From Mobula birostris (taxonomy: Eukaryota): a stretch of 64,000 nucleotides of DNA. Shown piece after piece: positions 1 to 40,708 of this stretch; within the stretch, counting starts at the first letter, position 1; every line of letters starts with the position of its first letter. Both the position numbers and the translations under genes were made by a program. Location: assembly GCF_030028105.1 (NCBI RefSeq), contig NC_092383.1:85951921-86015920 (forward strand), read 5' to 3'. The notes under the pieces are model-generated. The model saw only the letters and a list, made by a program, of their open reading frames with translations. It ran no database searches and was not told the origin of the DNA.

Positions 1-559
1 AGGGAGAAATTCTTCAAAAAATGGAAAGGTAAAAGCAAATTTACAGAAGCAGATTAAAGATTATTTTGTGTCATTTCCAGCACACGAGTGTAAAGGAGAA
101 CAAAAAAAAATTGTTACTCCAGATCCAATGCAGCACCAAGAAGACAGAAATGATAAAGAACGTGATAATAATGAATAAGGATATTTTATTGAAAGCTGTT
201 ACTGTGTTCTAAGGAAACAGCCCACACTGTCTATGGGTATAATTGAATTCCAGGGAAACTGAGAAGACAACAGCATCGTTCCTCATTACATACTCAGAGC
301 TCTTCACAAGTTATTTGATTGGAGTCAACATTGTCACTGCCCACTAATGTCTCAGTGTGTTTCCACATTTCTGAGTCAGTCCCAATCCAGGCAGGTGAGG
401 AAAAGATCAGTGGGGGGGGGGTAACTTACTGGAGGCAATTGTGTGAGACAGGATTTGCCTGAATTTGTAAAGACAAGATCTGATTTGGGATAGCCGACAT
501 GATTTTGTGCATGAAAGAACCTCTCTGAAATGAAATTGACTGAGTTTTTTTGAAAGGCT

Positions 560-1660
560 GACCAAAGGGACTGATGAGAGTAAGGAGTTTAGCAAGGCTT
601 TTGACAGGGTCTCACATTGTAGACTGATCTGCAATGTGAGATCACATGGGATGCTAGCTGGATCGATACTGAATAAGCTTGGTGGAACTAGTTAGCTTGG
701 TAGTGGAGTGTTGTTTTTTTGACAATATTAGACTTCTTCACCAGTTGAGTGCTGCTGGGATCAGTATTCTTATTTATTAACCAGTTACTTTCACCTATAT
801 CGATAATTTGTAACAATATTGTAGGTGTCATGATTAATAATTTGTGGACGTCACAGTAATGTAGTGGACAGTGAAAAGAGTTGTTGAATTTTACAACTGG
901 ATCTGGAAAATGAAAAAGTGTTCAGTCCCATTTCTCTCTGTCAGCAAGATACTCTGCACCTGTGCCCATCCTGTCTGCCTGAATTTGACCTGTCTCCTGC
1001 TCTTCTTGCTACTACCATTGGGCAGGAGGTGGAGGAGTCTTGGGTCCCACACGACCGGCTCCTGGACCAGCTTCATTCACCTCAGCACCGAACTGACTCT
1101 GAAGCTGTGGATTCACTTTTGGGGACTCTGCGATTCATGATCTATGTATTATTTGTTTACATATTTTTAGTATTTGCATGATTCATCTTCTTTTACACAT
1201 TTGATATTTGTCAGCCTTTATTGTGTGTGGCTTGCCGTGGATTCCATTGTGTTACTTTGTTTTGTGGGTGTTTGCAAGAAGATGAATCTCTAGTTTGTTT
1301 GTGGTGTACAGACTTTGATAATAAATTTACCTTGAACTTTGAACTGGGAAAGTTGCCAATGAAATAAATGGCTGGAATTGAATTCAGGCAGTGTGAGGTG
1401 TTGTATTTCGGGAAATTAAACAAGGACAGTAGAGAACTAGGTGTGTAACTAAATGGGTCTCTGAAAGTGGCATCGCAGGTGGACAAAGTGGTGAACAAGG
1501 CAGATGCCATGCTTGCCTTCAATGGATGAGGCAATAAGTACAGTTGGGATGGCATGTTACAGCTATAAAGAACACTGTCTAGACCTCACCTCAATTGCTG
1601 TGTGCAGTTCCAGAGGAAGGGCATGATTAAATTAGAGAGAGCGCAGAAAACGTTCACATA
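560..1660 (+). mobile_element. Degraded CR1 LINE RT fragments interrupted by a Rex1-like 3' end (about 850-1345)
   Basis: FSKAFDRVSH-like motif near 590; CR1-like 3' RT sequence at 1350-1660; intervening segment ends in an aataaa..ttgaactttgaact tail. Confidence 0.6.
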
Positions 1661-1689
1661 GACCGACCCCTGCAGAACACCATGAGTCA

Positions 1690-2700
1690 CTGATAGAAAA
1701 CAGAAATGCCCCCATTATTCCCACTCTTTGCCTCCTGCCAGCCAGCTAATCTTCTATGCACATGAGTATCTTTCCTGTGGTACCACGGATGCTTATCATG
1801 TTCAGCAGCCTGATGTGTGACACCTTGTCAAAGGCCTTCCAAAAATCCAAGTAAACAACATCCACTGATTTTTATTTGTCTATCCTGCCTGTTATTTCCT
1901 CCAAGAATTCCAACATCCTTTTCAGGTAAGATTTCCCCTTGAGGAAACCATATTTTCTCATATGCATCCAAGTACCCCGAAACATCATCCCTAATAATGG
2001 CCTTCAACATTTTCCTAAACACTCAAGTCAGTCTAACTGGTCCATTATTTCCTTTCTTCTGCCTCCACTCCTTCTTAAAGAGTGGAGTGGCATTTCCAAT
2101 TTTCCAGTTCTCTGGAACTTTCTAGAATCTAGTGATTCTTGAAGCATCTCAACTGATGCCACCACAATCCCTTCAGCTGCCTCTTTCAGAACCCTGGGGT
2201 GTAGTCCATCTGTACAAGATAACTTATCTACCTTCAGACCTCTCAGCTACCAAGTACCTTCTCCTTAGCAATAGCAACCACACTCACTTCTGTTCCCCTG
2301 ACATTCCCAGATTTCTTTCATACTACTTGTTCCTTCCTCAGTAACGACTGATGCAAGTCACTTACTCGGTCCGTCCGCCATTTATCTCTTATTACGATTT
2401 CTTGTATCTCTTATTACTATCTCTCCAACTTCATTATCCAGTGGTTTGATATCCACTCTCACTTCTCTTTTACACTTTTATATCTGAAAACTTTTGTTTT
2501 TTTTTATATTATTGGCTAGTTTTCCTTCAAATTTCATCTTTTCTCTCTTTGTGACTTTTCTCATTGCCTGCTGTTGCTTTTAAAAGTTCCCCAATTCTCT
2601 AAATTCCCACTAATATTTGCTATATTATATGCCCTTCCTTTTGTTTGCATGACAGTGTCACTGTCCCACAACTCAACACCTACTCTAGCATCTTCAGTGC
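1690..2700 (-). mobile_element. Old CR1 LINE remnant shared with paralogous introns
   Basis: DFWKAFDKV near 1830-1850 (minus strand); related blocks recur at about 25050-25570 and 40070-40420. Confidence 0.6.
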
Positions 2701-2961
2701 AGAAGCTAGAAATATTTATGCAATGCTCCCAATTTTTCTGGATGTGCAAATCCAACTGTGTTTGAGATGCTCCACGTTTTCCTGGACGAAGAGCCAGACT
2801 TAACTGTTCTCTGCACTTTATTTCTACCCCATGGTGGCTGCAATGTGTAGCTTCTAGAAATGTAAAGATATTCCTTACCCTAACGAGAAGTGTAAGAGCA
2901 GCAGTAACAGAGGAACAAAAAGAAATATTTAAATGTATCCTCTCTTGAAAGGAGAACTTAC

Positions 2962-3282
2962 TGGTGCCATTGATTTCTGTCACGTAGCTGCAGATCTCTC
3001 CGTTGTTGAAGACTGTCACATCAACCATTGCACTGGATCTTGCTCCAAGCCAATTCGAGGCACTGCAGTAATATTGATGGTGCTGCTGGTTGAAGGATTG
3101 ACAATGTAGAGCCAGTTCATTGGTATGTGAGATCTTTGGGTGCCGAGATGAGGTTTGTTCATACCATGTGTACTGAATGGGAAGGGATCCCTGGAAGGAC
3201 TCACAGGAAACTGTCAATGAGCCCCTGATACGTGAGACCTTTGCTGATGACAGATATTGAAGCACAGGAACAGACACAGATT
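2962..3282 (-). CDS. Gene A exon: C2/I-type Ig domain of a pIgR/CD300-like receptor
   Basis: Acceptor cccacag|AA at 3282 and donor ACCA|gtaagt at 2962; 321 nt, phase 1-1, open. Translates (E)SVSVPVLQYL..VSCESFQGSLPIQYTWYEQ..LHCQSF..YYCSASNWLG..VFNNGEICSYVTEINGT with canonical C-W-YxC. Confidence 0.9.
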
Positions 3283-3339
3283 CTGTGGGAAGGAATTAAA
3301 TATCCAGACCATGAATAAACATCTGAAAATCAAACACTC

Positions 3340-3937
3340 TTTGGCTACATTATTAAGTACACCTGTTCACCTGCTCATTAATACAAATATCTAATTAGCT
3401 ATTTGTGTGGCAGAAACACTGTCCACAAAGGATGCAGACGTGGTCAAGACATTCACTTGTTGTTCAGGCCAAACATCAGAATGGGGAAGAAATGTGATCA
3501 AAGTAACTTTACCCATGGAATGATTGTTGGTGCCAGATTAAGTAGTTTAAGTATCTCAGAAACTGCAGATCTTCTGGGATTTTCACACCCGCTGTCTCCA
3601 GACTTGGCAAAGAATGGTGTGAAAAACAAAAAGTAACATCCAGTGAGCAGCAATTCTATGAGCATAAAACCCTTGTTGATGAGAGAGGTCAGAGGAGAAT
3701 GGCCAGACAGGGTTCAAGCTGACAGAAAGGTAACAGGAATTCAGATAATCATGTGTCACAACAAAGGTATTCAAGATAACCATGTGTTACAACAGTGGTC
3801 TGCATAAGAGCATCTCTAAATGCACAATACATTGAACATTGAAGTGGATGGGGTACAGCAGCATAAGACAACAAACATACATCCATTGGTTACTTTATTC
3901 TGTACAACAGGTATCTAATAAAGTGATGGTTGAGTGT
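3340..3937. mobile_element. Non-autonomous Tc1-like element in the V-C intron
   Basis: Degenerate ends resembling CACTCAGTGGCCACTTTATTAGGTACA / TAATAAAGTG..GAGTG; orthologous copy at about 26205-26745 and a terminal remnant at about 23155-23205. Confidence 0.65.
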
Positions 3938-4202
3938 TTAAAAGCAGCAACTTGTGAGATACCCGTCAGATGTTAGATGGCTTCAGGAGAAAATGAATTT
4001 GTGACGGGGTACAGTGTAGAGAGAGAAGCATTTGGCACTGAGATTAATGCAGAGATCTTTAGGGATGGACATGGTCTGGACAAAGATCTTGTAACTCTGC
4101 TGAGACTGCAGAGGAGGAGGAGGAGATTGCATTTCTCCATTCAACGTTTAACCCTGGGATCAGCACATCGCCACTCCCCAGGTCATCTAATGCTCTGAAC
4201 AT

Positions 4203-6228
4203 TCATAAGATCATAACAACATAAGAAATAGGAGCAGGAGTAGGCCATCTGACCCATCGAGCCTGCTTCCAAGTTCAATAAGTTTATGGTTGATCTGACC
4301 ATGGACTCATCTCCACCTATCTGCCTTTTCCCCATAATCCTTAATTCCCCTACTGTGCAAAAATCTATCCAACCTTGCCTTAAATATATTTACTGAGGTA
4401 GCCTCCACTGCTTCATTGGGCAGAGAATTCCACAGATTCACCACTCTCTGGGAAAAGCAGTTCCTCCTCATCTCCATCCTAAATCTACTGCCCCAAATCT
4501 TGAAGCTATGTCCCCTAATTCTAGTCTCACCTACCAGTGGAAACAATTTTCCTGCCTCTATCTTATCCATTCCTTTCATAATGTTATATATTTCTCTAAG
4601 ATCTCCTCTCATCCTTCTGAATTCCAGCGAGTACAGTCCCAGGTGACTCAATCTCTCCTCAAAGTCTGACCTCCTTGTTTTTGGAATCAACCTGATGAAC
4701 TTCCTCTGCACTGCCTCTAAAGCCAGTATATCCTTCCTCAAGTAAGGAGACCAGAATTGTACACAGTACACCAGGTGCGGCCTCACCAGTACCCTATACA
4801 GTTGCAGCATAACCTCTCTGCTTTTAAATTCAATCTCTCTAGAAATGAAGGCAACATTCCATTTGCCTTCTTGACAGCCTGCTGCACCTGCAAACCAACC
4901 TTTTGTGATTCATGCACAAGCACTCCCAAGTCCCTCTGTACAGCAGCATGATGCCATTTTTTTACTGTTTAAATAATAATATGCTCTTTCACTTATCCTT
5001 CCAAAGTGGATGACCTCACATTTACCAATATTGTACTCCACCTGCCAGACCCTTGCCCACTCACATTACCTATCTATATCTATCTGCAGACTCTCCGTAC
5101 CTTCTGCACAATTTGCTTTTCCACTCAATTTAGTGACATCAGCAAACTTTGATACACAACACTTGGTCTCCTCTTCCAGATCATTGATGTATATAATCAA
5201 CAGTTGTGGGCCCAACACCAACCCCTGCAGTACACCGCTTACCACTGACTGCCAACCAGAGTGACACCCATGTATCCCAGCTCTCTGCTTTCTAATCATT
5301 AACTAATCCTCTATCCATGATAATACACAGCCCTAACTCTACGGATCCTGTCACGTGATTGGCAGCAATGAATATATCGAGTCAGGATTTATAAACAAAC
5401 AACCATTTATTAAACCCTGAAAAAAAAATGAAAACCCTAACGGGAAGTAAACGACTATGTGGCCACTCAGTAAACCGCTACTCAGTACTAGTTCTTAAAG
5501 CGATTAATGCGAAACCGGTTCTTAAAGCGATAAATTGAAACACAGTTCTTTGAATGGTAAATTTTAAAGTCCAAGAGTTTTGTATAGTCAATTAGGAGAG
5601 ACTTTCATGAAGTAACAAATTCCTCGAAGACACGACGTCACTGCCACTCCCAGGCAAATCCCGCCTTGTCCACAGGATTCAAGACGACGAAAATAAAACT
5701 TTTTAAAGGCACTGACCTTCCTCCGTAGAATAGAACCTGCACAGCCTTTTCTGCTTCCTTTTTAGCAGAGGCTATCTCATGCAGATCACTCTTTCTTGAA
5801 TGATTTCAATAATGGTCAATCCTTTCCAAACCTGTCAAACGTCTCCTTCAGGGTCCTGTCTTCACTCTCCAATGTTACTGAAAAGATACATTAACAAACC
5901 TGGCAGCGATTGGTCAAACCACCGGCTCAGACTTTTATACCTTACATTAGAACGTAAAATTCCGTTTAAAATCAAAACGGCATCATAATGCAAATAAGCA
6001 GCAGAGCGGAGTATATCTCATTGATGTTCTAACTGGAAAACTAAATGCGTCACCAGGGGTCTTCCCTTTTATACCCGTGGTGAACATGTCATCACATGAC
6101 CTCACATTAGCAGGAAAATTACATCAGGTGACCTCCAAAAGACCATTACATCATTCTCACAAGATCTCCTTTAGGTATATAACAATCCTTATCTCATTGA
6201 TAAGTCTTTTATGTGGCACCTTATTCCC
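4203..6228 (-). mobile_element. CR1 LINE, 5'-truncated 3' portion, split by a solo LTR
   Basis: ORFs 4307-4810 and 5066-5299 are CR1 RT C-terminus (SGVLQGLVLGP, KFADVTKL). KVPHKRLINEIRIRRVR reads across the LTR junction. Confidence 0.88.
5349..6184. mobile_element. Solo LTR (836 bp) with 4-bp TSD ATCC
   Basis: TGTCA..TAACA termini; ATCC at 5345-5348 and 6185-6188; removing it restores the CR1 frame. Confidence 0.85.
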
Positions 6229-6293
6229 CGAAGTAACCATGGATGAGACATTTATTTTACTGAAGGCACAAAGTTAATCACTGAGAAACCTAC

Positions 6294-6614
6294 CATCAGA
6301 TACTTGTAGATGTATACTAAATATCAGATCAGCACCTTCTCTTGTAATTCCACAGCTGTACCATCCTGCATCTCCAGAGCGAAGATTATCCACAGTAACA
6401 GTAAATATTCTTTGTTTTTGGTTATCTGTGATTGATATTCGTCCACTCTGTCCATGTTGCCCATTTGTTTCCACTAAAACTGAACATTGGTGAGTCCATC
6501 CATGGCACCAATGCTTTTGGTATGAGCGGTACATTGCTTCATAGTGACAATCGATTGTAATCGCCCTTCCCACAACTCCTCTTACATATTTCTTTGCTAA
6601 CAATGCACCTGAAC
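6294..6614 (-). CDS. Gene A exon: V-type Ig domain, CD300/pIgR family
   Basis: Acceptor ctccctcag|GT at 6614 and donor GATG|gtaggt at 6294; 321 nt, phase 1-1, open. ITIDCHY..KHWCHGWTHQC..DAGWYSCG has the extra C-C' cysteine pair (WCx6C) typical of CD300/pIgR V domains. Confidence 0.93.
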
Positions 6615-6699
6615 CTGAGGGAGGTAATTTCAGATTTGAGGGGAAAGGAACAACTTAATGCAAACAATTAACTTTGAACATGATGATAAAAACATGTCC

Positions 6700-6900
6700 A
6701 GGTCACATTCAGCATGTGGACCATGACACCTCAGCTAATGATTTTGGTCTGAAGTGCAGTCAGTGCTTTTACTATGTCAGCTGTGTCAGTGCTCTCTCCC
6801 CTGTGTCAGTACATTGTGGGTTCACTTCCCACTCCAGAGTCCTGAGCAGAAACCCAGGGCTGATCTTCCAGTGCAGTAATGAGGGAGAGCGGGCAGTGTT
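6700..6900 (+). mobile_element. tRNA-derived SINE fragment, with a paralogous copy at about 27370-27550
   Basis: B-box-like GGGTTCACTTCCCACTCC followed by cagagtcctgagcagaaacccagggctga..cagtgcagta, resembling chondrichthyan SINE heads from memory. Confidence 0.5.
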
Positions 6901-8033
6901 GAACTTTCAGTTACTTCAGAATATGTCGGCCTTTGAAATGTCAACAAAGATCCCAGCTATGTCATTTGAGATACTTACAGGTGTGTGTGCTTGTGTGTAT
7001 TTGTCTCAGATTCCACGGAACTCTGGGTTTCAGATGGAGGTCGGTAGGATCATTTGAGGCCAATGTCCTGACTTCCTCCTCACTTACAGACAAGTTTATA
7101 AACTGCAGAGAGAAACCCCTCATGATGTCTGAAACAGTGCCCTCTGGTTCAATCGAAATTTTACATTTTATACCTGTCAATTATTTTATTATTTTATGTG
7201 TATTTGGAAGGTGGTGCAACAGTGGTCATAACTACTTTAATGTCTAGAAATCCAGAAGTGATTTCAGTTTCTGTAAGGATACCTTGAAGAGTTAAATACC
7301 AATTTATTAATTATACCCTTAATTAAGAAACATATATCAATAATGATAATGATGAACTTCCAGATGTCAAAATCCCATCTAAATCGGAAAGACCTTCATG
7401 GACAGAAATCTCTCATCCCCACCCACCCTGGTTTACCTTTGACTCCAGATCTAGTAATGTTCATTACTAATTTCCGAGTGAAATGGCCCAGGAAAGACAC
7501 TGATTTCAAGACAATAACGTCAATTGGTGTAGTGATCCCTGCAGAGTGAGATCAGATTCCAGCAATGGTAGACGCGATGTTTCCGCTTAACAGCCTCCAG
7601 GACTTTTCTCCAACTGGGCATATTCTCCTCCCAAGTGGGTCCACACTATTCCCCTTTTCTTCTTATCTGCTTCCACCTCTCACCCATCTCCAAACTCCAC
7701 CCCTTTTCACCCCCATTCCATTTGCCCATTGTGCTTCACACCTCCTCAGTCCCCGACCACCTAGTATACCCAGTCTCACAACTCCCCCTCTCCTATGTAC
7801 ACTATCTCCCTCTCCACTCACACTTGATGCAAAGTTCGACTCAAACCGTTGACATTCCCTCTCCTCTGACGGATGTTGTTTGACCCACTAAGTTCCTCCA
7901 GGAGTGAACTCTGAATTCCAGATTCTGTCATCTTTAGTGTCTACAGGCATTCAAGTACTGTTCTGAAAATGATGTATGACCCCCAACCCCAAACCAACAT
8001 TAATTGTGCAAAAGTCCTGTGCTTATCACTCAC

Positions 8034-8073
8034 CAGGTAGGAAACCAGTCAGAAGAATGCAAGTCCAGAGCAT
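8034..8073 (-). CDS. Gene A leader (signal peptide) exon, MLWTCILLTGFLP
   Basis: ATG at 8073, 13 codons plus G, then a gtgagt donor; phase 1 joins the V exon in frame (MLWTCILLTGFLPGSGALLAKK). Homologous exons at 28231 and 40669. Confidence 0.85.
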
Positions 8074-8153
8074 TTTATTCACAGAGACCCAGCCAGGACC
8101 TGTTTGCCCTCAGAGAGAAATAACTGTGAAATAAACATGTGGAAGAAGGCAGC

Positions 8154-8197
8154 AGGAAGTTGTATCAAAAAACTACAGTGACACACTAGGGTGTGGT
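8154..8197 (-). promoter_or_regulatory. Putative proximal promoter of gene A with ETS (AGGAAGT) and RUNX (TGTGGT) motifs
   Basis: Motifs at 8154-8160 and 8192-8197, about 80-125 nt upstream of the ATG, in a block conserved upstream of all three leaders. Function is inferred. Confidence 0.45.
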
Positions 8198-8410
8198 ATG
8201 TGACAATCAGGAAAGCTCTTAGTTATTTTTAGGAAGACTGAAACATTTAAACAATTTCCAAAGATTAAACGGAATGATGAGAAGAGTTAAATATTAGGCT
8301 TAGAAAATATATCAATGGGATGAGTTGCAAAGTAAAAGGCAGACAAAATTGAAAAGAGCGAATACAGATCTGAAGGTTTTATATCTGAATGTGCGCAATA
8401 TATAGAACGA

Positions 8411-10700
8411 TTACTTGCAGTACCAGAGGAAAAACAAACTGGACCATTGCTACAGTGCCTACAGTGCTATTCCACGCCCTCACTTTGAGAAGTCTGATCA
8501 CCTAGCTGTAGTTCTACTTCCTGAGTATAGGCAGAGACTGACGACTGCAGCACCAGCAGTGAGGACCAAGAAGGTTTGGACAAGGGAAGCACAAGAGCGC
8601 CTACAGGACTACTTTGAATCGGTGGACTGGAATGTATTCAGGGATTCATCTTTGAATCTGGATGAGTATGCTGCTGTTGTTACCGACTTCATTGAAGCCT
8701 GTGTGGATGAGTGTGTGCCTACAAAGACTTACCGTACATTCCCAAACCGAAAGCCGTGGATGAACCAGGAGGTACGTCGTCTGTTGAAAGTTATATCTGT
8801 GGCATTTAAGTCTGGCAACCCAGACCTGTAACAGAAAACTAGGTATGATTTGCGGAGGGCTGTTTCAAAGGTGAAGAGACAATTTCAAATGAGGTCGGAG
8901 GTGACATCAGATGCACGGCAACTCTGGCAGGGTCTGCAAGACTTTACTTCCTACAGAGCAAAACTCAATAGTATGAATGGCAGCGATGCTTCACTACCAG
9001 ATGAACTCAACACGTTCTATGCACACTTTGAAAGGGAGAGCACAACTACAGTTGTGAAGATCCCTGCTGCACCTGCGGAACCTATGATCTCTGTCTCATA
9101 GGCCAATATTAGGCTGTCGTTAAAGAGAGTGAACCCTTGCAAGGCAGAAGGTCCCAATGGAGTACCTGGTAAGGCCCTGAAAACCCATGCCAACCAACTA
9201 GTTGGAGTATTCAAGGACATTTTCAATCTCACTGCTACGGGCAGAAGTTCCCACTTGCTTCAAAAAGGCAGCAATCATACCAGTGCCTAAGAAGAATAAT
9301 GTGGGCTGCCTCAATGACTATCACCCAGCAGCACTCACATCGACAGTGATGAAATGCTTTGAGAGGTTGCTTATGACTAGACTGAACTCCTGCCTCAGCA
9401 AGGACCTGAACCCATTGCAATTTGCCTATCGCCACAATAGGTCAACGGCAGACACAATCTCAATGGCTCTCCACGTGGCTTTAGACCACCCAGACAACAC
9501 AAACACCTACGTCAGGATGCTGTTCATCGACTATAGCTCAGCATTTAATACCATCATTCCCACAATCCTGATTGAGAAGCTGTAGAAACTGGGCATCTGT
9601 ACCTTCCTCTGCAATTGGATCCTTGACTTCCTACTGGAAGACCACAATCTATGCAGATTGGTGATAACATATCCTCCTCGCTGGCGATCAACACTGGCGC
9701 ACCTCAGGGGTGTGTGCTTTGCCCACTGCTTTACTCTCTGTATACACATAACTGTGTGGCCAGGCATAGCTCAAATACCATTTACAAATTTGCTGATGAT
9801 ACAACCTTTGTTTGTAGAATCTCAGGTGGTGACGAGAGGGCGTACAGGAGTGATATATGCCAACTAGTGGAATGGTGCCACAGCAACAACCTGGCACTCA
9901 ACGTCAGTAGGACGAAAGAGCTGATTGTGGACTTCAGGAAGGGTAAGACGAAGGAGCACATACCAATCCTCATAGAGGGATCAGAATGGGAGAGAGTGAG
10001 CAGCTTCAAGTTCCTGGATGTCAAGATCTCTGAGGACTTAACCTGGCCCCAACATATCGATGTAGTCATAAAGAAGGCAAGACAGCAACTATACTTTATT
10101 TGGAGTTTGAAGAGATTTGGCATGTGAACAAATACACTCCAAAACTTCTGTAGTTGTGCCGTGGAGAGCATTCTGACAGGCTGCATCACTGTCTGGTATG
10201 GAGGGGCTTCTGCACAGGACCGAAAGAAGCTGCAGAATGTTATAAATCTAGTCAGCTCCATCTTGGGCACTAGCCTGCAAAGTACCCAGGACATCTTTAG
10301 GAAGTGGTGTCCCAGAAAGGCAGCGTCCATTATTAAGGACCTCCAGCACCCAGCGCGTGCCCTTTTCTTTCTGTTACCATCAGGTAGGAGATACAGAAGA
10401 CTGAAGACACACACTAAGCAATTCTGGAAAAGCTTCTTCCCCTCTGCCATCCGATTCCCAAATGGACATTGAAGGTTTGGACACCACTTCACTTTTTTTA
10501 ATATACAGTATTTCTGTTTTTGCACATTCTTTTAAATCTATTCTATATACATAATTGATTTACTTGTTTATTTATTATGTTTTTTTTATTTATTATTTTT
10601 TTTTTCTCTCTGCTAGATAATGTGTTACATTGAACTGCTGCTGCGAAGTTAACAAATTTCACCTCACATGCCAGTGATAACAAACCTGATTCGGATTCTG
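8411..10700 (+). mobile_element. Rex1/Babar-type LINE, ORF broken by stops and frameshifts
   Basis: [54 protein letters not shown]; tail gataacaaacctgattcggattctga. Confidence 0.88.
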
Positions 10701-10701
10701 A

Positions 10702-15320: not shown

Positions 15321-15329
15321 TAAACTGCA

Positions 15330-16459: not shown

Positions 16460-17194
16460 GCTCACAAGATCACACAAATAGAAATTAAATATTAAATACA
16501 CAGAAGTCTCCAATAGCTAGGATCAAAGGACAGTCCTGGAATAGAGGTCATCCCTTTAGAACAGAACTGAGGAGAAATTTTGTGGCCAGAGGATGGTGAA
16601 TCTGTGGAATTCATTGCCACAGATGGCTGTGGAGACCAAGTCATTGGGTATATTTAAAGCAGAAGTGGATAGGTTCTTGATTAGTAAGGGCGTCAAAGTC
16701 TTCAAGGACAAGACTGCAGAATTACGTTGAGTGGGATAATAAATCAGCTATGATAGAACGGCAAAGCAAACTTGAAGCAATGAATGGCTTAATCCTGATC
16801 CTTTGCTTACACAGTATCTTATGGTCTTAACTCCATCAAGAAAATCCAGGAGCCTGAATGTGATCTATTCGCCATGTATAATGTCACTGTAGTGAAGAAT
16901 ACTAGCATTATTTTTTCACCTTCATGAAGTTAACAATTGAATGACAAGAGAGATTAATTCTCCACGAATGTTATATTTGCACAATTTCTGAAGAAGTATG
17001 AATATTTGATCCTGGTACAAAATTCCAGCACTATCTGTGTGATCCAGAAGCCTTCACTTTACCTTATAGAGCAGTCTGTGGGGAGCTGATTCATTGCGTC
17101 TCTGTAAAAGGCAACCGTCAAATCATCAGACTCATCGACACTGGGAACTCTGCTATACAGTTGTATCTGGAGCTTGGACTCCAATATATTCGCA

Positions 17195-17346: not shown

Positions 17347-17437
17347 CTTAGTTTCCCTTGTGAGCCATGTGACTGAAATCATGCAGATCATCAGCAGAGC
17401 GATGAGTAGCCAACGGCCCATTTTCCTTATCATGAAA
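17347..17437 (-). CDS. Transmembrane exon with a charged Arg: (S)FMIRKMGRWLLIALLMICMISVTWLTRETK
   Basis: Acceptor ctttgctcag|T at 17437 and donor AAG|gtaggc at 17347; 91 nt, phase 2-0, matching the stalk exon's phase 2 donor. Hydrophobic run preceded by GRW. Confidence 0.8.
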
Positions 17438-19837: not shown

Positions 19838-19883
19838 CTTGCAGTTGATACTGTTGTAAATGTTTCACATGAATATTCACATC
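19838..19883 (-). CDS. Short stalk exon (G)CEYSCETFTTVSTA(S)
   Basis: Acceptor ctcaatag|GA at 19883 and strong donor AAG|gtaagt at 19838; 46 nt, phase 1-2, exactly bridging phase-1 Ig exons to the phase-2 TM exon. Confidence 0.75.
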
Positions 19884-21795: not shown

Positions 21796-22116
21796 CAGTG
21801 CCAGTGAATCGGATCACAAAACTGCAGTTGTCTCCTCTGTTTTATATGGACACATTCACTATTTCACTAGTCTTTGCTCCATGAATATTTGAGGCTGTGC
21901 AGTAATATTGATGGAGCTGGTGTTTGAAGGATTGACAACTTAAATTCAGTTTAGTTGAGTTTGGGATCTTTGAATCCACAGAGGAGATGTTTTCATACTA
22001 CGTGTACTGAATGGGAAGGGATCCCTGGACAGACTCACAGGACACTGACACGGAGCCCCCACCACACGAGACATTTGCAGAAAAGAGAAATTGAAGCATA
22101 GGATCAGACACCGGTT
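21796..22116 (-). pseudogene. Unit B second C2-type Ig exon, two nonsense codons
   Basis: 321 nt with intact ag/gt sites. Conserved Trp codon is TAG (21998-22000, QYT*YE) and there is a TAA at 21842-21844; the rest aligns with the 2962-3282 exon. Confidence 0.88.
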
Positions 22117-23422
22117 CTTAGGGAAAGAATCATTGAACATCAGAAAGTCAATAAAGATGCCATAAGTGGGGATCTGAACTCCACATCTGTCGTGGCTCTG
22201 CATCCTCGCAGATGCCTGAACTGCCACATTTGCCATTATCCTAAAACACAGCAGAATTACAGATCAGGACAGCAGTGATGACGCTGAGGGTGTGTCAGTG
22301 TGAAAATGAGAGTTACAATCTCTCTCAGCATCAAGGAGACTGTCTCCAGTGCTGTTTGGAAAATTCAAGGCAAGCATTGTTTTAAGGTGCCATCTTCAGG
22401 CACACAGACGGAACAGATACAAGAGCAATATTAGAGATGCATTTAGACTAACCCACTAAAAGGAGTAGAATTAGGCCATTTGGTCTATTGGGTCTGCTCT
22501 GACATTCAATAATGCTGATAAATATTTTCCTTCTCAAACCCATTCTGCTGCCTTCTCCCTGAATCCTTTGATGGCCTTACTAATCAAGAACCTATCATAC
22601 TACACTTTAAGTATACCCAATCACTTGGCTTCCATTGCCTTCTGTGGCAATGAATTCCAAGAATCACTACCGTCTGGCTCAAGAAATTCCTCCTCAGCTC
22701 TATTCAAAACGAATGTCCTCCTATTGTCTCTCTCCCGCGGTCTAGACTCCTCCATGGTTGGAAACGTGCTTTCTACGTCTTCTCTATCTAGTCTTCAATA
22801 TTTTATAGGTTTCAATGAGATCCCCTCTCATTCTTCTAAATTCTAGTGAGTAAAGGCACAGAGCCATCCAATGTATCTCATATGTTAACCCTTTCATTCT
22901 GGGGAACATGGTCAGTGATACATGGCGGGCTGAAGGGCCTGTTTCTGGCCTGGAAGGTTCATGTTCAAACTTCTTCTGTAGTCCCATTGCAGTATTTTCC
23001 ATACGGGAATGGGCCGGGTGGAGGGGTCGGCTGCTGGGTGTGGGTGGTCAGCGGGTGCTGAGTGTGGGGGCTCAGAGTGGCATGATTTGGGGGAAGAAGC
23101 ACAGAGAGAGAGACAGACACAGAGAGACAGAAAGAAAAAAAAACATGGAGCAACTGATCAGTGGCCACTTTATTATGTACAGGAGGTGTCTAATAAAGTG
23201 GCCCCTGATCGTTGAAAGGCAGCAACTTGTGAGATATTGTCACATGTTTAGTGGCTTTCAGGAGAGAATGAAATTTTGACTGGGTTCAGTGACCTACCAT
23301 ATAGAAGGAAACATTTGGCACTGATATTAATGCAGAGATAGTGAGGGATGGACAGGGTGACAACAAAGATCATGAGACATTAACTTTATGGAAGGAACGA
23401 TGTTAATCCCCGGGAAACCTAC

Positions 23423-23544
23423 CATCAGATACTTGTAAACGTACGTTAAACATCGGATCGTAACCTGTTGTTTCAATAGCACAGCTGTACCATATTGTAT
23501 CTTCAGAGCGAAGATCCTTCATAGTAACAGTAAATACTCCCTGC
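23423..23544 (-). pseudogene. 3' half of a V-type Ig exon
   Basis: QGVFTVTMKDLRSEDTIWYSCAIETTGYDPMFNVRLQVSD followed by an intact G|gtaggt donor; the 5' half is replaced by unrelated sequence. Downstream intron is homologous to 26700-26960. Confidence 0.88.
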
Positions 23545-23955: not shown

Positions 23956-24276
23956 CGTCAGGTACTTGTAGATGCACATCAAACACTGGATGATTGCCAG
24001 ATATTGTAACTCCACATCTGTAAAGTCCTGTATCATTAAAGACAAGATTCTCCATAGTAACAGTAAATATTCCCTGGGATGTGTTATCTCTGATTGTCAT
24101 TCTTCCATACTGCTCATTTGTCCCATTTGTATTCACTAACAATGTGCATTGACGACCCCAGATGCGGCACAAATACTTTGTGTGTGAAGAGTACATTAGT
24201 GCATAGTGACAATCGATTGTGATCGCTCTTCCCACAACTCCTCTTACTTTATCTTCTGCCCATAAAGCACCCGAAA
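23956..24276 (-). CDS. Unit B second V-type Ig exon (open)
   Basis: Acceptor ctccctcag|TT at 24276 and donor GACG|gtaggt at 23956; 321 nt, open. ITIDCHY..KYLCRIWGRQC..DTGLYRCG; canonical Trp replaced by Leu. Confidence 0.88.
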
Positions 24277-25823: not shown

Positions 25824-26143
25824 TGGTGCCATGGATTTCTGTCACATTACTGCAGATCTCTCCATTGTTGAAGACTGTCACATTAACCATTGCACTGGAT
25901 CTTGCTGATCCAGATTCGAGGCACTGCAGTAATATTGATGGTGCTGCTGGTTGAAGGATTGTCAATGTAGAGCCAGTTTATTAGTATCTGAGATCTCTGG
26001 ATGCCCAGATGAGGTTTGTTCATACCACGTGTACTGAATGGGAAGGGATCCCTGGAGAGACTCACAGGAAACTGACACTGAGCCCCCGAGATGAGAGATA
26101 TTTGCTGTTGACAGATATCGAAGTACAGGAACAGACACAGGTT
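25824..26143 (-). pseudogene. Unit B first C2-type Ig exon, nonsense codon plus 1-nt deletion
   Basis: 320 nt versus 321 in gene A. TGT(Cys) is TGA at 25962-25964 and there is a 1-nt deletion near 25910; splice sites are intact. Confidence 0.9.
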
Positions 26144-26960: not shown

Positions 26961-27281
26961 CATCAGATACTTGTAAATATACATTAAACATCGGATCGTG
27001 ACCTGTTGATTCAATACCACAGCTGTACCATCCTGTATCTCCAGAGTGAAGATCCTTCATAGTAACAGTAAATATTCTCTGTTTTGGGTTATCTGTGATT
27101 GACAATCGTCCACTCCGTCTGTGTTGCCCATTTGTTTCCACTAAAACTGAACATTGATGAGTCCATCCATGGCACCAATACTTTGTGTGTGAGCGGTACT
27201 TTGCTTCATAGTGACAATCGATTGTGATCGCTCTTCCCACAACTCCTGTTACATTTTTCTCCGCCCACAATTCACTTGAAA
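26961..27281 (-). CDS. Unit B first V-type Ig exon (open), paralog of 6294-6614
   Basis: Acceptor cttccctcag|TT at 27281 and donor GATG|gtaggt at 26961; 321 nt, open. WCHGWTHQCSVLVETNGQH is identical to the gene A V exon. Confidence 0.92.
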
Positions 27282-28230: not shown

Positions 28231-28270
28231 CGGATAGGAAACCAAACAGAAGAATCCAAATCCACAGCAT
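28231..28270 (-). pseudogene. Unit B leader exon MLWIWILLFGFLS with mutated splice donor
   Basis: ATG at 28270, 40 nt like the other leaders, but followed by GGGAGT instead of GTGAGT. Confidence 0.82.
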
Positions 28271-28683
28271 TTTATTCACAGAGACTCAGCCAAGACCTGT
28301 CTGTCCTCAAAGAGAAATGACTGAAATAAAAATAAGGAAGAAGGCAGCAGGGAGTTTCATCAAAAAAAACACAGTGATACAACAGGTGTGTGGCATGTGA
28401 CAATCTGAAAAACTTCTAGTTACATTAGCAAGTCATGAACATTTAAGCAATTACCAATGACTGTATGAAATGCTGAGAAGTGTTAAAGTATTAGACAAAA
28501 GCAACAATGTTCTAATCTGATGTAAAAATAAACATTTGGGGGTGCGCTGACACAGTGTATTAATCTGAAATATAAACCACTCTGTCTCCACAGATCCCAC
28601 CTAATTCCCAAAGTTCATCCAGAAGCTTTATTTTGTGTTTGGTTTAAAATGTTAGCCATGGTGAGTCATTGGGAAAAAGTTAA

Positions 28684-29066
28684 TGGCCGCGGGATCCTTG
28701 AGGCTGGGTTTCTTGGAGCTTGGCCGCGGGATCCTCGAGGCTGGGGTACTTGGAGCTTGGCCGCGGGATCCTCGAGGCTGGGGTTCTTGGAGCTTGGCCG
28801 CGGGATCCTCGAGGCTGGGGTTCTTGGAGCTTGGCCGCGGGATCCTCGAGGCTTGGGTTCTTGGAGCTTGGCTGCGGGATCCTCGAGGCTGGGATTCTTG
28901 GAGCTTGGCTGCGGGATCCTCGAGGCTGGGGTTCTTGGAGCTTGGCCATGGGATTATCGAGGCTGGGGTTCTTGGAGCTTGGCTGTGGGATCCTTGAGGC
29001 TGGAGTTCTTGGGGCTTGGCTGCGGGATCCTCGAGGCTGGGGTTCTTGGAGCTTGGCTGCGGGATC
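28684..29066 (+). repeat. 37-bp GC-rich minisatellite, 10 full units plus a partial
   Basis: Unit TGGCCGCGGGATCCTCGAGGCTGGGGTTCTTGGAGCT repeats at 28684, 28721 ... 29054, with scattered substitutions. Confidence 0.95.
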
Positions 29067-29828: not shown

Positions 29829-30084
29829 AGCATGAAGTCTGAGGGAGCTTCAGTACAAGGGGTAATGATTCTTATGTGTCACACATATTGGAGAAGTAAT
29901 AGAGAATCAGAAACAGATTCAGGTTTTATCACCGACATAGTGTATGTTTTGAAATTTGCTATAACAGTCCTAACGGGAATATTCAATGATTACCATTGGA
30001 GCTGGACACAGAGTCACCACTTATCGGCGCCATCTTGAATTTCAACTGAGCAATATTAATTGTTTCACCTTAATTTCATTGTAA

Positions 30085-34724: not shown

Positions 34725-35229
34725 TATGTGTACTGTATGTGCCTATATAAGAGCCTCTAAACGTCTCTACCATCATGCCTGCAGTGTATCCAGGGACCCA
34801 CCACTCATTGTATATAAAAAAACCCTACCTCTTACATTTACCATAAACTTTCTTCCACTCACCTTAAATGGATGTGCTCTGGTGTTGGTCATTGTCACCA
34901 TGTGAAACAGGTGCTGGCTGTCCTCTCAATCTATGCCTTACACTCGACAATGCTTCAGGCGTGATTGAACCAGATTCAGTCCCCTCAACTAGTGAAGTCC
35001 AGCACAACATATACCTTCTGTAACACTTTTTTAATGTATGCAGAAACTTTGAGGACTGAACAGACTTGGACCACAATATCCCGCTGTATCTCCTCATTGT
35101 TAAGAATTCTGTCACTAACCTTGTAATCTGCCTTCAAGTTCTATCACACAAAGTAAATCACTTCACATTTTTCAGTGATAAAATCCACCTTCCACTTCTC
35201 CACCCAGCACTGCATCCTGTCGAGCTCCT

Positions 35230-36226
35230 CTTGTAACTGGGGCACTCCTCTTGTAAGCAGCACTGGGGCTCCACAGGGGACTGTCTTGTCTCCCTTTCTC
35301 TTCACCACTTACACCTCGGACTTCAACTACTGCACAGAGTCTTGTCATCTTCAGAAGTTTTCTGATGACTCTGCCATAGTTGGATGCATCAGCAAGGGAG
35401 ATGAGGCTGAGAAAAGGGCTATGGTAAGAAACTTCGTCACATGGTGTGAGCAGGATTATCTGCAGCTTAATGTGAAAAAGACTAAGGAGCTGGTGGTGGA
35501 CCTGAGGAGGGCTAAGGCACTGGTGATCCCTGTTTCCATCCAGGGAGTCAGTGTGGACATGGTGGAGGATTACAAATACCTGGGGATACGAATTGACAAT
35601 AAACTGGACTGGTCAAAGAACACTGAGGCTGATTACAAGAAGGGTCAGAGCCATGTCTATTTCCTGAGGAGACTGTCTTTTAACATCTGTTGGACGATGA
35701 TGAGGATGTTCTACTAGTCTGTGGTGGCCAGTGCGATCATGTTTGCTGTTGTATGCTGGGGCAGCAGGCTGAGGGTGACAGCCACCAACAGAATCAACAA
35801 ACTCATTCGTAAGGCCAGTGATGTTGTGGGGATGGAACCGGACTCTCTCACGGTGGTGTCTGAAAAGAGGATGCTGTCCAAGTTGCATGCCATCTTGGAC
35901 AATGTCTCCCATCCACTAAATAATGTACTGGTTGGGCACAGGAATACATTCAGCCAGAGACTCATTCTACCGAGATGCAACACTGAGTGTCATAGGAAGT
36001 CATTCCTGCCTGTGGCCATCAAACTTTACAACTCCTCCCTTGGAGGGTCAGACACCCTGAGCCAATAAGCTGGTCCTAGATTTATCTCCATCTGGCACAA
36101 TTTATATATTATTTAATTATTTATGGTTTTAAATTGCTATATTTATACTCTATTCTTGGTTGGTGCAACTGTAACGAAACCCAATTTCTCTTGGGATCAA
36201 TAAAGTATGTCTATGACTATGACTAA
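35230..36226 (+). mobile_element. Rex1/Babar LINE 3' portion inserted in a minus-strand CR1 remnant
   Basis: STGAPQGTVLSPFLF, KFSDDSA, KSFLPVAIKLYN; tail aataaagtatgtctatgactatgacta. Confidence 0.85.
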
Positions 36227-37330: not shown

Positions 37331-38434
37331 TTAGTATTTGCACTTTTTTGGTTGGTTGTCTTTGTTCATGTGTAGTTTTTCATTGATTCCATTGTATTTC
37401 TTTGTATTTACACTGAATGCCTGTAAGTAAATGAATGTCAGGATAGTATATGGTGACATATACAGTATGCACTTTAATAATATATATAAGTTTCTTTCCT
37501 GAGAATGATGCAATAATTTGATCAACATAAAAATAAAATTAATTGAAATTGGATATATTTCCAGTCAATATTCAAAGGTCTTAAAAACAAATGAAGAATG
37601 GATTAAAAGTTGGGCGTTGAATAAAATGAGTGGTTACAGCTTGCAATGGTCAGTGGGGTGTGTATCTGCAGATAGAAGTTGCTGTTTTTCTCAGAGTTGA
37701 CACGTAACTGTAACCCGTGGATGTACAATTAGCATTGGAGCTGCTACATGAAGGGAGTTGTTAGCAAATGTAAGGATCACCATTGTATGATGACAAAGTG
37801 CGAAATGTTGAAAGATTCTTTGTAATCAGATAATGATGTGGTATAGCATAAATTTCTTCACACAGTGGCTGAGGGAGAGAAGAATGAGAGCAAAGGCCAC
37901 ATATACATGGAAAACTGTGGCAGGTCACTATTACACAGCAAGTTACAACATAGAATAAAACTGCCATCTACACCCCAATTCTGAGTTTATTTTAGTTGTC
38001 TATCTTTCACCATTGGTCAAGAGGATGTAATTTTCTTTGATAAATACGTTTTAAAGGATTCACATTTTAATGCATCAAGTTTCAGTAACTGACAGACTGT
38101 AGTTTCAAGATCAGGCACCTGAATCAGCATGGATAACTTCACTCACTCAACACTGAACTGATCACGACACACAACCTATGGGCTCACTTTCAAGGACTCC
38201 ACAACTCGTGTTCTCAGTGCTTATTTATTTGGAGATTCAGCACAGAACAGGCCCTTTAGGCCAAATGAGCCACACCGCCCAGTAACCCACCGATTTAACC
38301 CAGCCCAATTCCAGCACAGTTGTCACTAATTTCATTTGGCACAAGAAGATGGATTTTGCTGTATGCTTCGATGTTTTCATGTACACGTGACAAATAAAAA
38401 GCCAATCTTTTTAACAAAACTGAATATACATGCA

Positions 38435-38622
38435 ATATTTCCTTCCTCTCCATGTAGCCCATTTATTTCCACCAAGACTGAATATTGGTGACCAATATTC
38501 CACAGCACCAGTGCATTGTGTGTGACTGATTTACTGTCGCATAGGGGCAATCAATTGTGATCGCTCTTCCTACAACTCCTCTTACCCCATCTCTCCATCT
38601 CCACATTTCCATCTCTCTCTAA
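38435..38622 (-). pseudogene. Unit C 5' half V-type Ig exon, frameshifted and truncated
   Basis: VRGVVGRAITIDCPYATVNQSHTMHWCCG/GHQYSVLVEINGLHG with indels; GA-rich expansion after the acceptor; homology lost near 38435. Confidence 0.8.
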
Positions 38623-39934
38623 CTAAAAGGAAGATGAAAGTGAGAGCAAAATTCTTGAGGATCTGAAGACAATTCAGAAATGGAGCACAGGAGGGTGAGA
38701 GACAACATGATCGAGATGTACAAAATGATCAGAGGCATAGATCAAGTGTCTATCCAAAGTATATCTCACGGCAGAAATGGCTAAAGTGTGGGGAGTAATT
38801 TCAAGGTGATTGGAGGATAGTATTGAGGGGACGTCAGAGACAGGATCTTCACAGAGTGCTGGGTGCATGGAAAGCCTTGCCAGGAGTGATGGAATATGCA
38901 GATACATTTAAATAATCTTTCAGGTGGGCACATAGAGGATAGGAGAGTTACAGAAGGGAAGGATTAGTCTGATCTTCAAGGAGGGTAAAAGACCCTGTAC
39001 TCTGCTGTAATGTTCTATCTTCTATGTTCCATAAGTGGTGGAAACAACCCAGTCCACGACAGGGAAAGGCCACCCCACCACTGGACAAACACATTTACAA
39101 GGAGAGCTGTCACAAAAAAGCAACGTCCATCATCAAGGACCCCCACCGTCCACGCTCTTTTCCCACTACTACCATTGGATAAGAGGTGCAGTCACCTTAG
39201 GTCCCACTGCCCCAGGTTCAGGAATAGTTAATACCCTTCAATCATCAGACTCCTGAACCGAGGTAGATAACTTCACTCACCTCAACTCTGAACTGATTCC
39301 ACAACCCATGGACTCAATCTCACTTTCAAGGATTCTACAACACATTATCAGCATAAAAATAACATCAACAATATTTAGATTTTTATTTGCACTGTCTTCT
39401 TTGCACATTGGTTGATTGTTAGTCTTTTGTTTGGGTGCAATATTTTCATTGATTCTATTGTATTTTTTTGTTCTACTGTGAATGCCCACCTGAAAATGAA
39501 TATCAAGGCAGCACTTTGATAACAAATTTCCTTTGAACATTGAAGTCTAGCAGTAATGGAGATGCTGCTTTCAAATCAGATGCCTTCCAACTACTCAAAT
39601 GCACACAAAGATCACTCAGTGATGTTTCATTAAGAGTCCCAGCTGTAATGGCTACACTTTTCATTTAAACAACACTGGCCTTGACTTTTTCAGATGACAT
39701 TTGGGTGTGAGGATCAGTGGAATCCCTTAGTTCTCACAGTACCGTCAACCATCCATCTGACCACACTGCTGTCTGATGGTACATCAGGAGTGAAGACAGT
39801 CACTCCAATCCCCCTCCAATCTACTGGAGCCTGAAAAGCCAAGCCCAAAATCTCATTGGACAGCCTCCTTTTCCAGTATTTCCTGCTCCCTTGAGAATTT
39901 TTAGCAAACTGGATTCTGAATGATGAGAGTTTGA

Positions 39935-40010
39935 AAACGGAGAGAAACTCTGGTATAGCAAATGGAGAGAAACTCTGGTATAGCAAACAGAGAGAAACTC
40001 TAGTATAGCA
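39935..40010. repeat. 25-bp tandem repeat, 3 copies
   Basis: GGAGAGAAACTCTGGTATAGCAAAT at 39939, 39964 and 39989. Confidence 0.9.
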
Positions 40011-40668
40011 TGAAGTCTGTGGACCATTTTGGGACTTAGCAGAGCAAACAAAGGCACTGATAAACAAAGTCTCCTTTGTCTATCCTGCCTGCTATTTGCT
40101 CAAACAATTTCAATGGATTTGGGAGGGTAGATTTCTTCTGAAAGAAACCATGTTGATTTCAGCATATTTTATCATATGCCTCCGAGTACTCTGAAATCCC
40201 ATCCCTAATAACAGATTCTAACATCTTACCATCCATTGAAGCCAGGCTAGTTGGCCTGTAATATCCTGCCTTTTGTCTCCCTCCCTTCTTAAAGAGATGA
40301 ATTACATTTTAATTTTTCAGTCATCTGGAACCATAGTTAAAAGATTACTTCTAATGCTTCCACAATCCCTCCAGCTACTTCATTAAGAACCCTGGGATGC
40401 AGTCCAGATAACTGATCCTATTTCACAATGCTCTTTCAACTATTCTGCTCCATTCAGGTTCAGTGCAGGGTCTTGACCCAAACCATCAACAATCCCCTTC
40501 CCCCAGATGGCTGCTGCGTGGTCTGCTGAGTTCCTCTGGGAATTTTCTCTAAACTCCAGATTCTGAAATCTTTAGTGTCTACATATATTCACGCACTGTT
40601 CTGGAAATTATGAATGACCCCCTAGTCAAAACAAATTATGAAAATATCCCATGCTGGTTGCCACTCAC

Positions 40669-40708
40669 CATGTAGGACACAAATTAGAAGAATCAAACTC
40701 CACATCAT
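40669..40708 (-). CDS. Unit C leader exon MMWSLILLICVLH with intact donor
   Basis: ATG at 40708, 40 nt, G|gtgagt donor. Flanks are homologous to the other leader regions; AGGAAGT at 40789-40795 and AACCACA at 40806-40812 lie upstream. Confidence 0.8.

Follow-up and report, generated by a model that had tools for sequence, protein, structure and literature searches.

What kind of receptor is encoded by the run of immunoglobulin exons in this 64-kb stretch of ray DNA (the window, meaning the whole of the stretch that was analysed), and do its alternating V and C2 exons belong to single genes? We found that the window holds one apparently intact gene start (gene A, 8073 to the window start), one broken gene (gene B, 28270-17054), and one fragment (gene C, 40708-38431), all on the minus strand and all of the modular domain immune-type receptor (MDIR) kind, and we consider it highly probable that the window is part of a tandem MDIR cluster in a batoid, which is probably a myliobatiform ray. 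The MDIR family is said to have been first described in clearnose skate by Cannon et al. 2006 (Immunogenetics 58:362), with an abstract that reportedly gives four Ig-domain subfamilies (CD300/pIgR/TREM-like, FcR-homologue-like) and one to six domains per protein. For the present work, the family was defined by the deposited named proteins, by that abstract, and by a citing paper on MDIRs (PMC3031540). Family and architecture are thus already known, and the window adds ray members to them.

Upon searching the window with a leader profile, we obtained exactly three full-length matches (E 1e-132 to 1e-141; ATGs at 40708, 28270, and 8073), each of them a phase 1 exon of 40 nt. The full V exons measured 321 nt each, carried AG/GT sites, and matched the Pfam V-set at E 1e-11 to 1e-12, and the Ig exons were in phase 1-1 throughout. 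The TM exon was recovered only via tblastn with ray homologues; a high-threshold hydrophobicity scan gave nothing useful. An earlier sequence-only reading had placed on the minus strand three leader exons, five V exons (three full, two half), three C2 exons, one stalk exon, and one TM exon, and each was found at its claimed place and in that orientation (Table 1); likewise, the leader profile had no match between 25824 and 24276, where a leader had been said to be absent. The stops and the deletion in the 26-kb and 22-kb C2 exons and the GG donor of the 28-kb leader had been overlooked in that reading, and the cytoplasmic exon at 17101-17054 did not appear in its list. Searching the whole window by tblastn with ray homologues, we found no family exons past 40.8 kb, no ITIM-type TM or tail exons anywhere, and no further family exons after the half V of gene C. 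Matches of the P0015 C-terminus at 56.9-59.9 kb were set aside as not being receptor sequence; they correspond to an odd tail of that model, which may be repeat-derived.

Table 1. Receptor exons and related segments in the window, by gene.
Feature	Position	Strand	Sequence	Remarks
Gene A leader exon	8034..8073	-	MLWTCILLTGFLP	40 nt, phase 1, GT donor intact
Gene A N-terminal V exon	6294..6614	-		intact, pIgR/CD300-type, extra Cys pair WC..x7..C
Gene A first C2 exon	2962..3282	-		intact, FCRL-type
Gene A intron just upstream of second V	1..361	-		homologous to 24280-24646
Gene B leader exon	28231..28270	-		splice donor 28230-28229 GG instead of GT
Gene B N-terminal V exon	26961..27281	-		open reading frame
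Gene B first C2 exon	25824..26143	-		in-frame TGA 25964-25962, 1-bp deletion 25908/25907
Gene B internal V exon	23956..24276	-		open reading frame, without own leader
385-bp copy	23159..23543	-		91% identical to 26696-27081 (3' half of 27-kb V and downstream intron)
Half V (3' half), inside 385-bp copy	23543-23423	-		
Gene B membrane-proximal C2 exon	21796..22116	-		TAG at conserved Trp 22000-21998, TAA 21844-21842
Gene B stalk exon	19838..19883	-	CEYSCETFTTVSTA	
Gene B TM exon	17347..17437	-	SFMIRKMGRWLLIALLMICMISVTWLTRETK	MDIR5-type short-tail form
Gene B cytoplasmic exon plus stop	17054..17101	-	RRNESAPHRLLYKVK	
Gene C leader exon	40669..40708	-	MMWSLILLICVLH	GT donor intact
Gene C 5' half V exon	38431..38609	-		frameshift near 38500, truncated

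The assignment to the MDIR family follows from several comparisons. The window domains were 50-73% identical to skate MDIR domains (56-73% for V exons, 50-63% for C2 exons), and the window exons matched MDIR2, MDIR3, and MDIR5 at E 1e-30 to 3e-58, these three named skate proteins having been retrieved with the alignment query (the elephant-shark MDIR2 word search gave only its own cluster). When a profile was made from the closest relatives, the skate MDIRs matched it with E-values of 1e-147 or lower, and the identity of retrieved proteins to window exons did not exceed 87%. Among solved structures, the best relatives of the V domain were pIgR (E 2e-50 over four stretches) and CD300f (1e-20; phmmer), and that of the C2 domain was human FCRL5 (E 1.7e-29 over six stretches), so that the cassettes combine a pIgR/CD300-like V and an FCRL5-like C2 in V-C2-V-C2 order, the MDIR-type modular ectodomain. 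The V-only composition of CD300 and pIgR proper was not seen, FCRL-type C2 exons being interleaved between the V exons, nor was the C2/I-only composition of FCRL proper, as pIgR/CD300-type V-set exons open each unit. Mapping the skate proteins with the window's own domains gave V-C for MDIR2, V-V-C-V-C for MDIR3, and V-C-V-C for MDIR5. Hence, the V-C2-V-C2 architecture that had been called unusual is one already characterised in the MDIR family, MDIR5 being V-C2-V-C2-stalk-TM, and by identity, trees, and domain order the window domains group with that family. The signalling end agrees as well: the stalk, TM segment, and tail of gene B matched the MDIR5 tail with 45% identity over 60 residues, and gene models of related rays end either in V-C-V-C-stalk-WKVGRWLL or in ITIM tails. 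The window also agrees with the large, complex multigene family that MDIRs form in cartilaginous fish, as it contains three tandem units.

Trees resolved these relationships down to single domain positions for three of the four domain types. The internal V at 24 kb joined domain 4 of skate MDIR3 and domain 3 of MDIR5 in a clade marked with a star (98/91). Domain 3 of MDIR3 and domain 2 of MDIR5 formed another clade (93/92) together with the C2 exons at 3 kb and 26 kb, and the V at 6 kb paired with the MDIR2 V (99/77); the C2 at 22 kb showed no resolved grouping with the skate membrane-proximal C2. We also weighed whether a new, non-MDIR family might have combined a CD300/pIgR-like V with an FCRL-like C2 independently, given that automated names in related species (pIgR-like, FCRL5, CMRF35-like, FCAMR-like) never say MDIR. 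This we regard as extremely unlikely in view of the identity to all three skate proteins, the identical domain order, the shared stalk/TM motif, and the grouping of three of the four domain types with skate domains of the same protein position (in trees without tetrapod outgroups).

Membership of the MDIR family being the preferred reading, the alternation of V and C2 exons within one gene can be followed in two paralogous units. Window positions 1-8297 are a segmental duplicate of 24280-28494, and positions 1-361 align with 24280-24646 at 75% identity over 370 bp; because this segment matches the leaderless intron before the second V of gene B, V-C2-V is the duplicated unit, and the second V exon of gene A is predicted to lie beyond the window start. 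The unit at 8.1-2.9 kb, whose V is 71% identical to the skate MDIR2 V, is the only one of intact appearance, and its remainder lies outside the window. Transcript data were in line with such genes. Contigs from runs X1-X3, which are only presumed to be RNA (X2 was flagged as probably DNA), contained a C2-to-V joint exactly at 25824|24276, as well as V-to-C2 and L-to-V joints; the depth of X2 was exon-shaped and was nil across several stretches of intron, a pattern that speaks for RNA. The contigs mismatched the window at roughly 7% of their positions and therefore represent paralogues rather than gene A or B, such that the predicted C2-to-V splicing was borne out by relatives about 93% identical to the locus. 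Of the 1358 nt of one paralogue contig, 1258 nt lay beyond the V donor, in sequence absent from the window. For reads on 19700-24400, no usable joint was found from the 24-kb V to a downstream exon, and the joints listed there were repeat-derived with sides of <30 letters. One might suppose that the V-C2-V string is an artefact in which adjacent L-V-C2 and V-C2-TM genes are read as one, since very long models such as P0001 (1254 aa, 11 domains) do resemble tandem-gene fusions. We give this next to no credence: the internal V lacks a leader in either paralogous unit, the contigs join C2 to V at exact exon ends, and skate MDIR3 and MDIR5, reportedly cloned as cDNAs, each hold V-C-V-C in one protein.

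With V-C2-V thus taken as part of a single gene, gene B is the one unit that can be read from leader to tail. Its exons make up the full L-V-C2-V-C2-stalk-TM-tail series in the short-tail MDIR5 form, yet it is very probably a pseudogene: its leader donor is lost, and its two C2 exons carry three stops and one frameshift, positions at which, in the first C2, the paralogue transcripts have TGT and an intact frame. In addition, a half-V duplicate is inserted within gene B, carried by the 385-bp copy, which is recent. The L-V-C2-V-(C2)-stalk-TM layout proposed by the sequence-only reading is therefore real as an exon order, but the only complete unit that displays it here is a pseudogene and so cannot itself yield a V-C2-V-C2 protein. 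Conversely, gene B could be alive if the disabled C2 exons and the half V were skipped to give an L-V-V-stalk-TM receptor. Both of its V exons as well as the stalk, TM, and tail exons do keep open frames and splice sites, and V-V junctions occur in relatives (C-V-V in P0013, V-V-V-C in P0225, and V-V-C-V-C in skate MDIR3). Nevertheless, we hold a living gene B to be very unlikely, because the next GT after its GG leader donor would shift the frame, leaving no way to attach a signal peptide in frame, because no locus-matching contig over gene B exons was seen in the runs and no V27k-to-V24k joint was among those listed, and because five independent lesions point to relaxed constraint.

In our reading, MDIRs are type I membrane receptors of cartilaginous fish, with an ectodomain built from phase-1 exon cassettes of pIgR/CD300-type V and FCRL-type C2 domains, arranged as V-C2, V-C2-V, or V-C2-V-C2. 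After the ectodomain come a Cys-containing stalk and one of two signalling ends, either a short tail preceded by a membrane segment whose outer edge is basic (WK.GRWLL), or a long ITIM-bearing tail preceded by a neutral membrane segment; in the window, the TM and tail of gene B match the former as in MDIR5, whereas the ITIM-tailed form is found in relatives in rays. Going by the example of CD300, KIR, and similar paired families, MDIRs are most likely paired activating/inhibitory innate immune receptors. The cluster grew by segmental duplication of the L-V-C2-V unit and is decaying in places. Such birth-and-death evolution had been suggested before, and it fits the state of the three units, of which one is intact as far as it can be followed, one is a pseudogene with several lesions, and one is a fragment; pieces of LINE reverse transcriptase are scattered among them. 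The suggested lineage expansion of these Ig-superfamily receptors in cartilaginous fish is likewise supported, and paralogous models occur by the dozens per species in rays, skates, sharks, and chimaera. As all Ig exons are in phase 1-1, exon skipping is conceivable, and the cassettes might then be used rather than only inherited, with skipping varying ectodomain length and V/C2 order, an idea that we consider unlikely. If it were true, even a "dead" unit like gene B would have a part to play, perhaps in a V-V receptor from another leader or as a donor of V cassettes among paralogues, and cassette exchange could have left its mark in the half-V copy with its 91% identity. On a related reading, which we hold to be similarly unlikely, the four domain positions appear to have remained orthologous between skates and rays, whereas sharks and chimaera appear to homogenise them within species, a contrast that, if true, would suggest ligand functions specific to each position in batoids.

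The locus provides an annotated genomic view of ray MDIR genes, including their exon cassettes, phases, duplication unit, and decay. As the sequence-only reading had anticipated, automated "pIgR-like" and "CMRF35-like" models exist in related species, as do "Fc receptor-like 5" models, and the present analysis shows that the inconsistent pIgR-like, FCRL5, CMRF35-like, and FCAMR-like labels in elasmobranchs all denote a single family, known since 2006; in this setting, being called "pIgR-like" is no sign of pIgR orthology. This should be useful to curators of shark and ray immune genes and to those seeking the pIgR of cartilaginous fish. MDIR ligands and signalling are no more testable from the window than from the existing cDNAs.

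Compared with known systems, the window units share their V type with mammalian CD300/CMRF35 and pIgR, down to the second pair of cysteines, which sits between strands C and C', and CD300 also has paired activating and inhibitory tails. However, only one V is present in CD300, pIgR is composed purely of V-type domains, and neither interleaves FCRL-type C2 domains. FCRL shares the C2 type, with human FCRL5 as best relative and ITIM tails in some members, but consists of strings of C2/I-type domains without a CD300-type V. The same two domain kinds as in the window are found in clearnose skate MDIR2 (P0237) and MDIR3 (P0192) and in elephant-shark MDIR2 (AFK11143.1, P0158): the MDIR2 V shares 71-73% identity with the N-terminal V exons of the window, and its V-C2 start equals that of gene A. 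MDIR2 and MDIR3 end in a neutral TM and an ITIM tail, an exon type that the window lacks, and the end of gene A lies outside it. The closest counterpart is clearnose skate MDIR5 (Rostroraja/Raja eglanteria; P0208), which has the layout of gene B, from the leader through V-C2-V-C2 and the Cys stalk to the TM (WKVGRWLL) and short tail, with identities to the window of 60-66% for V, 53-62% for C2, and 45% for stalk-TM-tail. Unlike this skate gene, gene B belongs to a ray, of another species and order, and is very probably a pseudogene with an extra half-V insertion; the internal V and the first C2 of the two species are positional orthologues in the trees.

We placed the V and C2 exons on the minus strand by stop-to-stop scanning combined with self-tblastn, the leaders with a profile built from three aligned upstream regions and searched against the window, and the stalk, transmembrane (TM) and last coding exons by tblastn with ray homologues. 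The exon inventory of the sequence-only reading, including its positions 25824, 24276 and 40708, proved correct. The leader profile gave exactly three full-length matches in the window (E 1e-132 to 1e-141), and its search yielded nothing resembling a leader between 25824 and 24276. All three full V exons follow a CAG acceptor and end in ...GATG/GTAGGT or ...GACG/GTAGGT, the Ig exons are phase 1-1 throughout, and the frame carries on through the stalk exon (phase 1 to 2) into the TM exon (phase 2 to 0).

Receptor exons and repeat elements of the window; V and C2 exons are named by rough position.
Feature	Position	Strand	Remarks
Leader ATG, gene C	40708	minus	profile match
Leader ATG, gene B	28270	minus	profile match
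Leader ATG, gene A	8073	minus	profile match
Complete V exon (27-kb)	27281-26961	minus	321 nt
Complete V exon (24-kb)	24276-23956	minus	321 nt
Complete V exon (6-kb)	6614-6294	minus	321 nt
Half V exon, 3' half	23543-23423	minus	inside 385-bp block 91% identical to 26696-27081
Half V exon, 5' half	38609-38431	minus	frameshift near 38500, then breaks off
C2 exon (26-kb)	26143-25824	minus	scan and self-tblastn
C2 exon (22-kb)	22116-21796	minus	scan and self-tblastn
C2 exon (3-kb)	3282-2962	minus	scan and self-tblastn
Stalk exon CEYSCETFTTVSTA	19883-19838	minus	46 nt; tblastn
TM exon SFMIRKMGRWLLIALLMICMISVTWLTRETK	17437-17347	minus	tblastn
Last coding exon RRNESAPHRLLYKVK, stop	17101-17054	minus	tblastn
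LINE reverse-transcriptase fragment	8415-10127	+	Pfam RVT_1, E 1e-8 to 2e-9 (with 35175-36068)
LINE reverse-transcriptase fragment	35175-36068	+	Pfam RVT_1, E 1e-8 to 2e-9 (with 8415-10127)
LINE-type reverse-transcriptase fragment	4307-4810	minus
37/38-bp GC-rich satellite	28684-29066		10 copies, 92% match; opposite orientation to 41957-42762
37/38-bp GC-rich satellite	41957-42762		21 copies, 99% match; inverted relative to 28684-29066

The stretch 24280-28494, in and just upstream of gene B (28270-17054), is duplicated segmentally as window 1-8297 at 75-82% identity with interrupting insertions, and the duplicated unit reads as leader-V-C2-V. Since window 1-361 matches the intron directly upstream of the 24-kb V exon, gene A (from 8073 down to the window start) also has a second, leaderless V, placed just beyond the window start. 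Given the 91% identity of the block that holds it, the 3' half V exon was copied recently and locally from the 27-kb V exon and the intron that follows it. This 385-bp insertion (23159-23543) lies 400 bp downstream from the internal V exon and long postdates the duplication behind the gene units (75-82% identity), which hints that V cassettes are still being exchanged or duplicated locally.

The proposed joining of a C2 exon to the following V was recovered in transcript data, which consisted of Logan contigs from three runs of one study, placed at 90% likeness. A contig joint linking 24276 to 25826 through an intervening TA resolved to an exact exon-exon junction, 25824/24276, with one mismatch; a V-to-C2 joint lay at 26139/27000, and one from 5'UTR/leader to V at 27282/28270. 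The contigs differ from the window at ~7% of positions, and over the 26-kb C2 exon at 20 of 298 positions plus three indels. Because of this divergence, and because they carry TGT at the window's TGA and a restored frame around 25906-25913, we take the contigs to be transcripts of close, ~93%-identical paralogues. They show that the modular domain immune-type receptor (MDIR) family, to which the domains belong, splices C2 to the next V, with expression of the locus itself lying outside their reach. The run types of the three read sets were guesses, and one, X2, bore the flag 'probably DNA'. Read depth in X2 follows the exons and drops to zero in several parts of the introns, a pattern consistent with RNA.

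The three units differ in their state of preservation. In gene A, the leader, V and C2 are intact with good splice sites throughout, and the unit continues past the window edge. Gene B has a GG leader donor (28230-28229) where both paralogues have GT, and splicing from the following GT would put the message out of frame; its first C2 carries a TGT>TGA change at 25964-25962 and a 1-bp deletion at 25908/25907, and its second C2 a stop at a conserved Trp (TGG>TAG, 22000-21998) as well as a TAA at 21844-21842. The intron between its internal V and second C2 houses the half-V copy, and open frames persist in both V exons as well as in the exons for stalk, TM and tail. Despite these open exons, the five independent lesions mark gene B as a pseudogene. 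Gene C (40708-38431) consists of a leader and a broken half V, and neither self-tblastn nor tblastn with ray homologues found further family exons downstream in it. With one intact-so-far unit, one pseudogene and one fragment, and with LINE fragments and satellite between the exons, the cluster presents the birth-and-death picture that had been suggested.

The LINE fragments, located in the receptor units' introns and spacers, explain the size differences between paralogous units. The two satellite blocks, ~88% identical to each other, adjoin the leaders of genes B and C, just upstream, and could delimit duplication units. An ORF at 14835-15152 (+) gave weak, sub-threshold GDSL-lipase/OSK-type matches (E 3e-5); as such a domain is present in some LINE ORF1 proteins, this ORF is probably a piece of a retrotransposon lying in the intron that separates the TM region from upstream sequence. 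Three blocks at 56934-59871 (-) show 65-71% identity to the C-terminal half of Hemitrygon model P0015, an odd part without receptor-like features, by which the model may have taken in a repeat or a neighbouring gene.

Among solved structures, the closest relatives of the V domain were pIgR (E 2e-50, four stretches) and CD300f/CLM-1 (1e-20), then NKp44 and TREM2, and its sequence contains the second Cys pair (YWCHGWTHQC) typical of this group. The closest solved relative of the C2 domain was FCRL5 (1.7e-29, six stretches). Pfam assigned the V exons to V-set and matched the C2 exon to Ig_3, Ig_C17orf99 and Ig_2, all sub-threshold. With the intact C2 exon as query, an exhaustive HMMER search returned 108 cluster representatives at E <= 1e-10; the matches looked up were all chondrichthyan, and most top matches checked also contained the V domain in alternation (V-C, V-C-V, V-C-V-C, up to 11 domains). 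The nearest relatives were myliobatiform rays, and the best exon identities to any retrieved protein were 75-87%. Automated models do exist in related rays, skates and sharks, as had been anticipated, under inconsistent names (pIgR-like, FCRL5, CMRF35-like, FCAMR-like). One matched cluster includes elephant-shark AFK11143.1, named 'modular domain immune-type receptor 2', and a subsequent profile search recovered clearnose-skate MDIR2 (416 aa), MDIR3 (701 aa) and MDIR5 (501 aa).

The family combines a modular V/C2 ectodomain with two alternative ends in type I membrane proteins: ray homologues end either in a short WK.GRWLL form or in a neutral TM and a tail with IVYADL, VYANM and TYADI motifs. 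MDIRs most likely act on leukocytes as paired inhibitory and possibly activating receptors, in which the inhibitory form would engage SHP phosphatases through its ITIM and the activating form would recruit an adaptor through basic residues at the membrane edge; the MDIR authors reportedly did not credit MDIR5 with a classical activating motif. If CD300 and pIgR, which bind lipids and polymeric Ig, respectively, are taken as analogues, the membrane-distal V would be the putative ligand-binding head.

In maximum-likelihood trees of the V and C2 domains, the 24-kb internal V joined MDIR3 domain 4, MDIR5 domain 3 and ray internal V domains in a starred clade (98/91), and the 3-kb and 26-kb C2 exons grouped with MDIR3 domain 3 and MDIR5 domain 2 (93/92). 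The MDIR2 V and the 6-kb V formed a pair (99/77), as did the 22-kb C2 and a Mobula model's membrane-proximal C2 (99/93); the trees did not resolve where the 22-kb C2 stands relative to the skate membrane-proximal C2. In batoids (skate MDIR3, P0192, and MDIR5, P0208, among them), there is one cross-species clade for the internal V and another for the first C2; in the proteins sampled from two sharks and the chimaera (P0012, P0201, P0228), domains 1/3 and 2/4 cluster within each protein, a result either of concerted evolution or of independent duplications in these lineages.

Cannon and colleagues, in 2006, are said to have described MDIRs as proteins of one to six domains drawn from four Ig-domain subfamilies, with similarity to CMRF35, pIgR, TREM, NKp44 and FcR homologues, the TM of MDIR1 being charged and MDIR2 and MDIR3 carrying ITIMs; this description agrees with the features measured here. 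Mapped with the window's own domains, skate MDIR2 is V-C2-TM-ITIM tail, MDIR3 is V-V-C2-V-C2-TM-ITIM tail, and MDIR5 is V-C2-V-C2 followed by a GHEYSC stalk, an ISWKVGRWLLF... TM and a short tail. Against the skate domains, the window's V domains are 56-73% and its C2 domains 50-63% identical, and its stalk-TM-tail shares 45% identity with MDIR5. The sequence-only reading was right about the kind of locus, a V-C2-V receptor cluster. Its claim of an unusual architecture falls, because the domains group cleanly with the known skate MDIRs, which share that architecture. The window holds new, partly decayed members of the MDIR family, and the domain order of gene B, stalk and TM motifs included, is identical to that of MDIR5.
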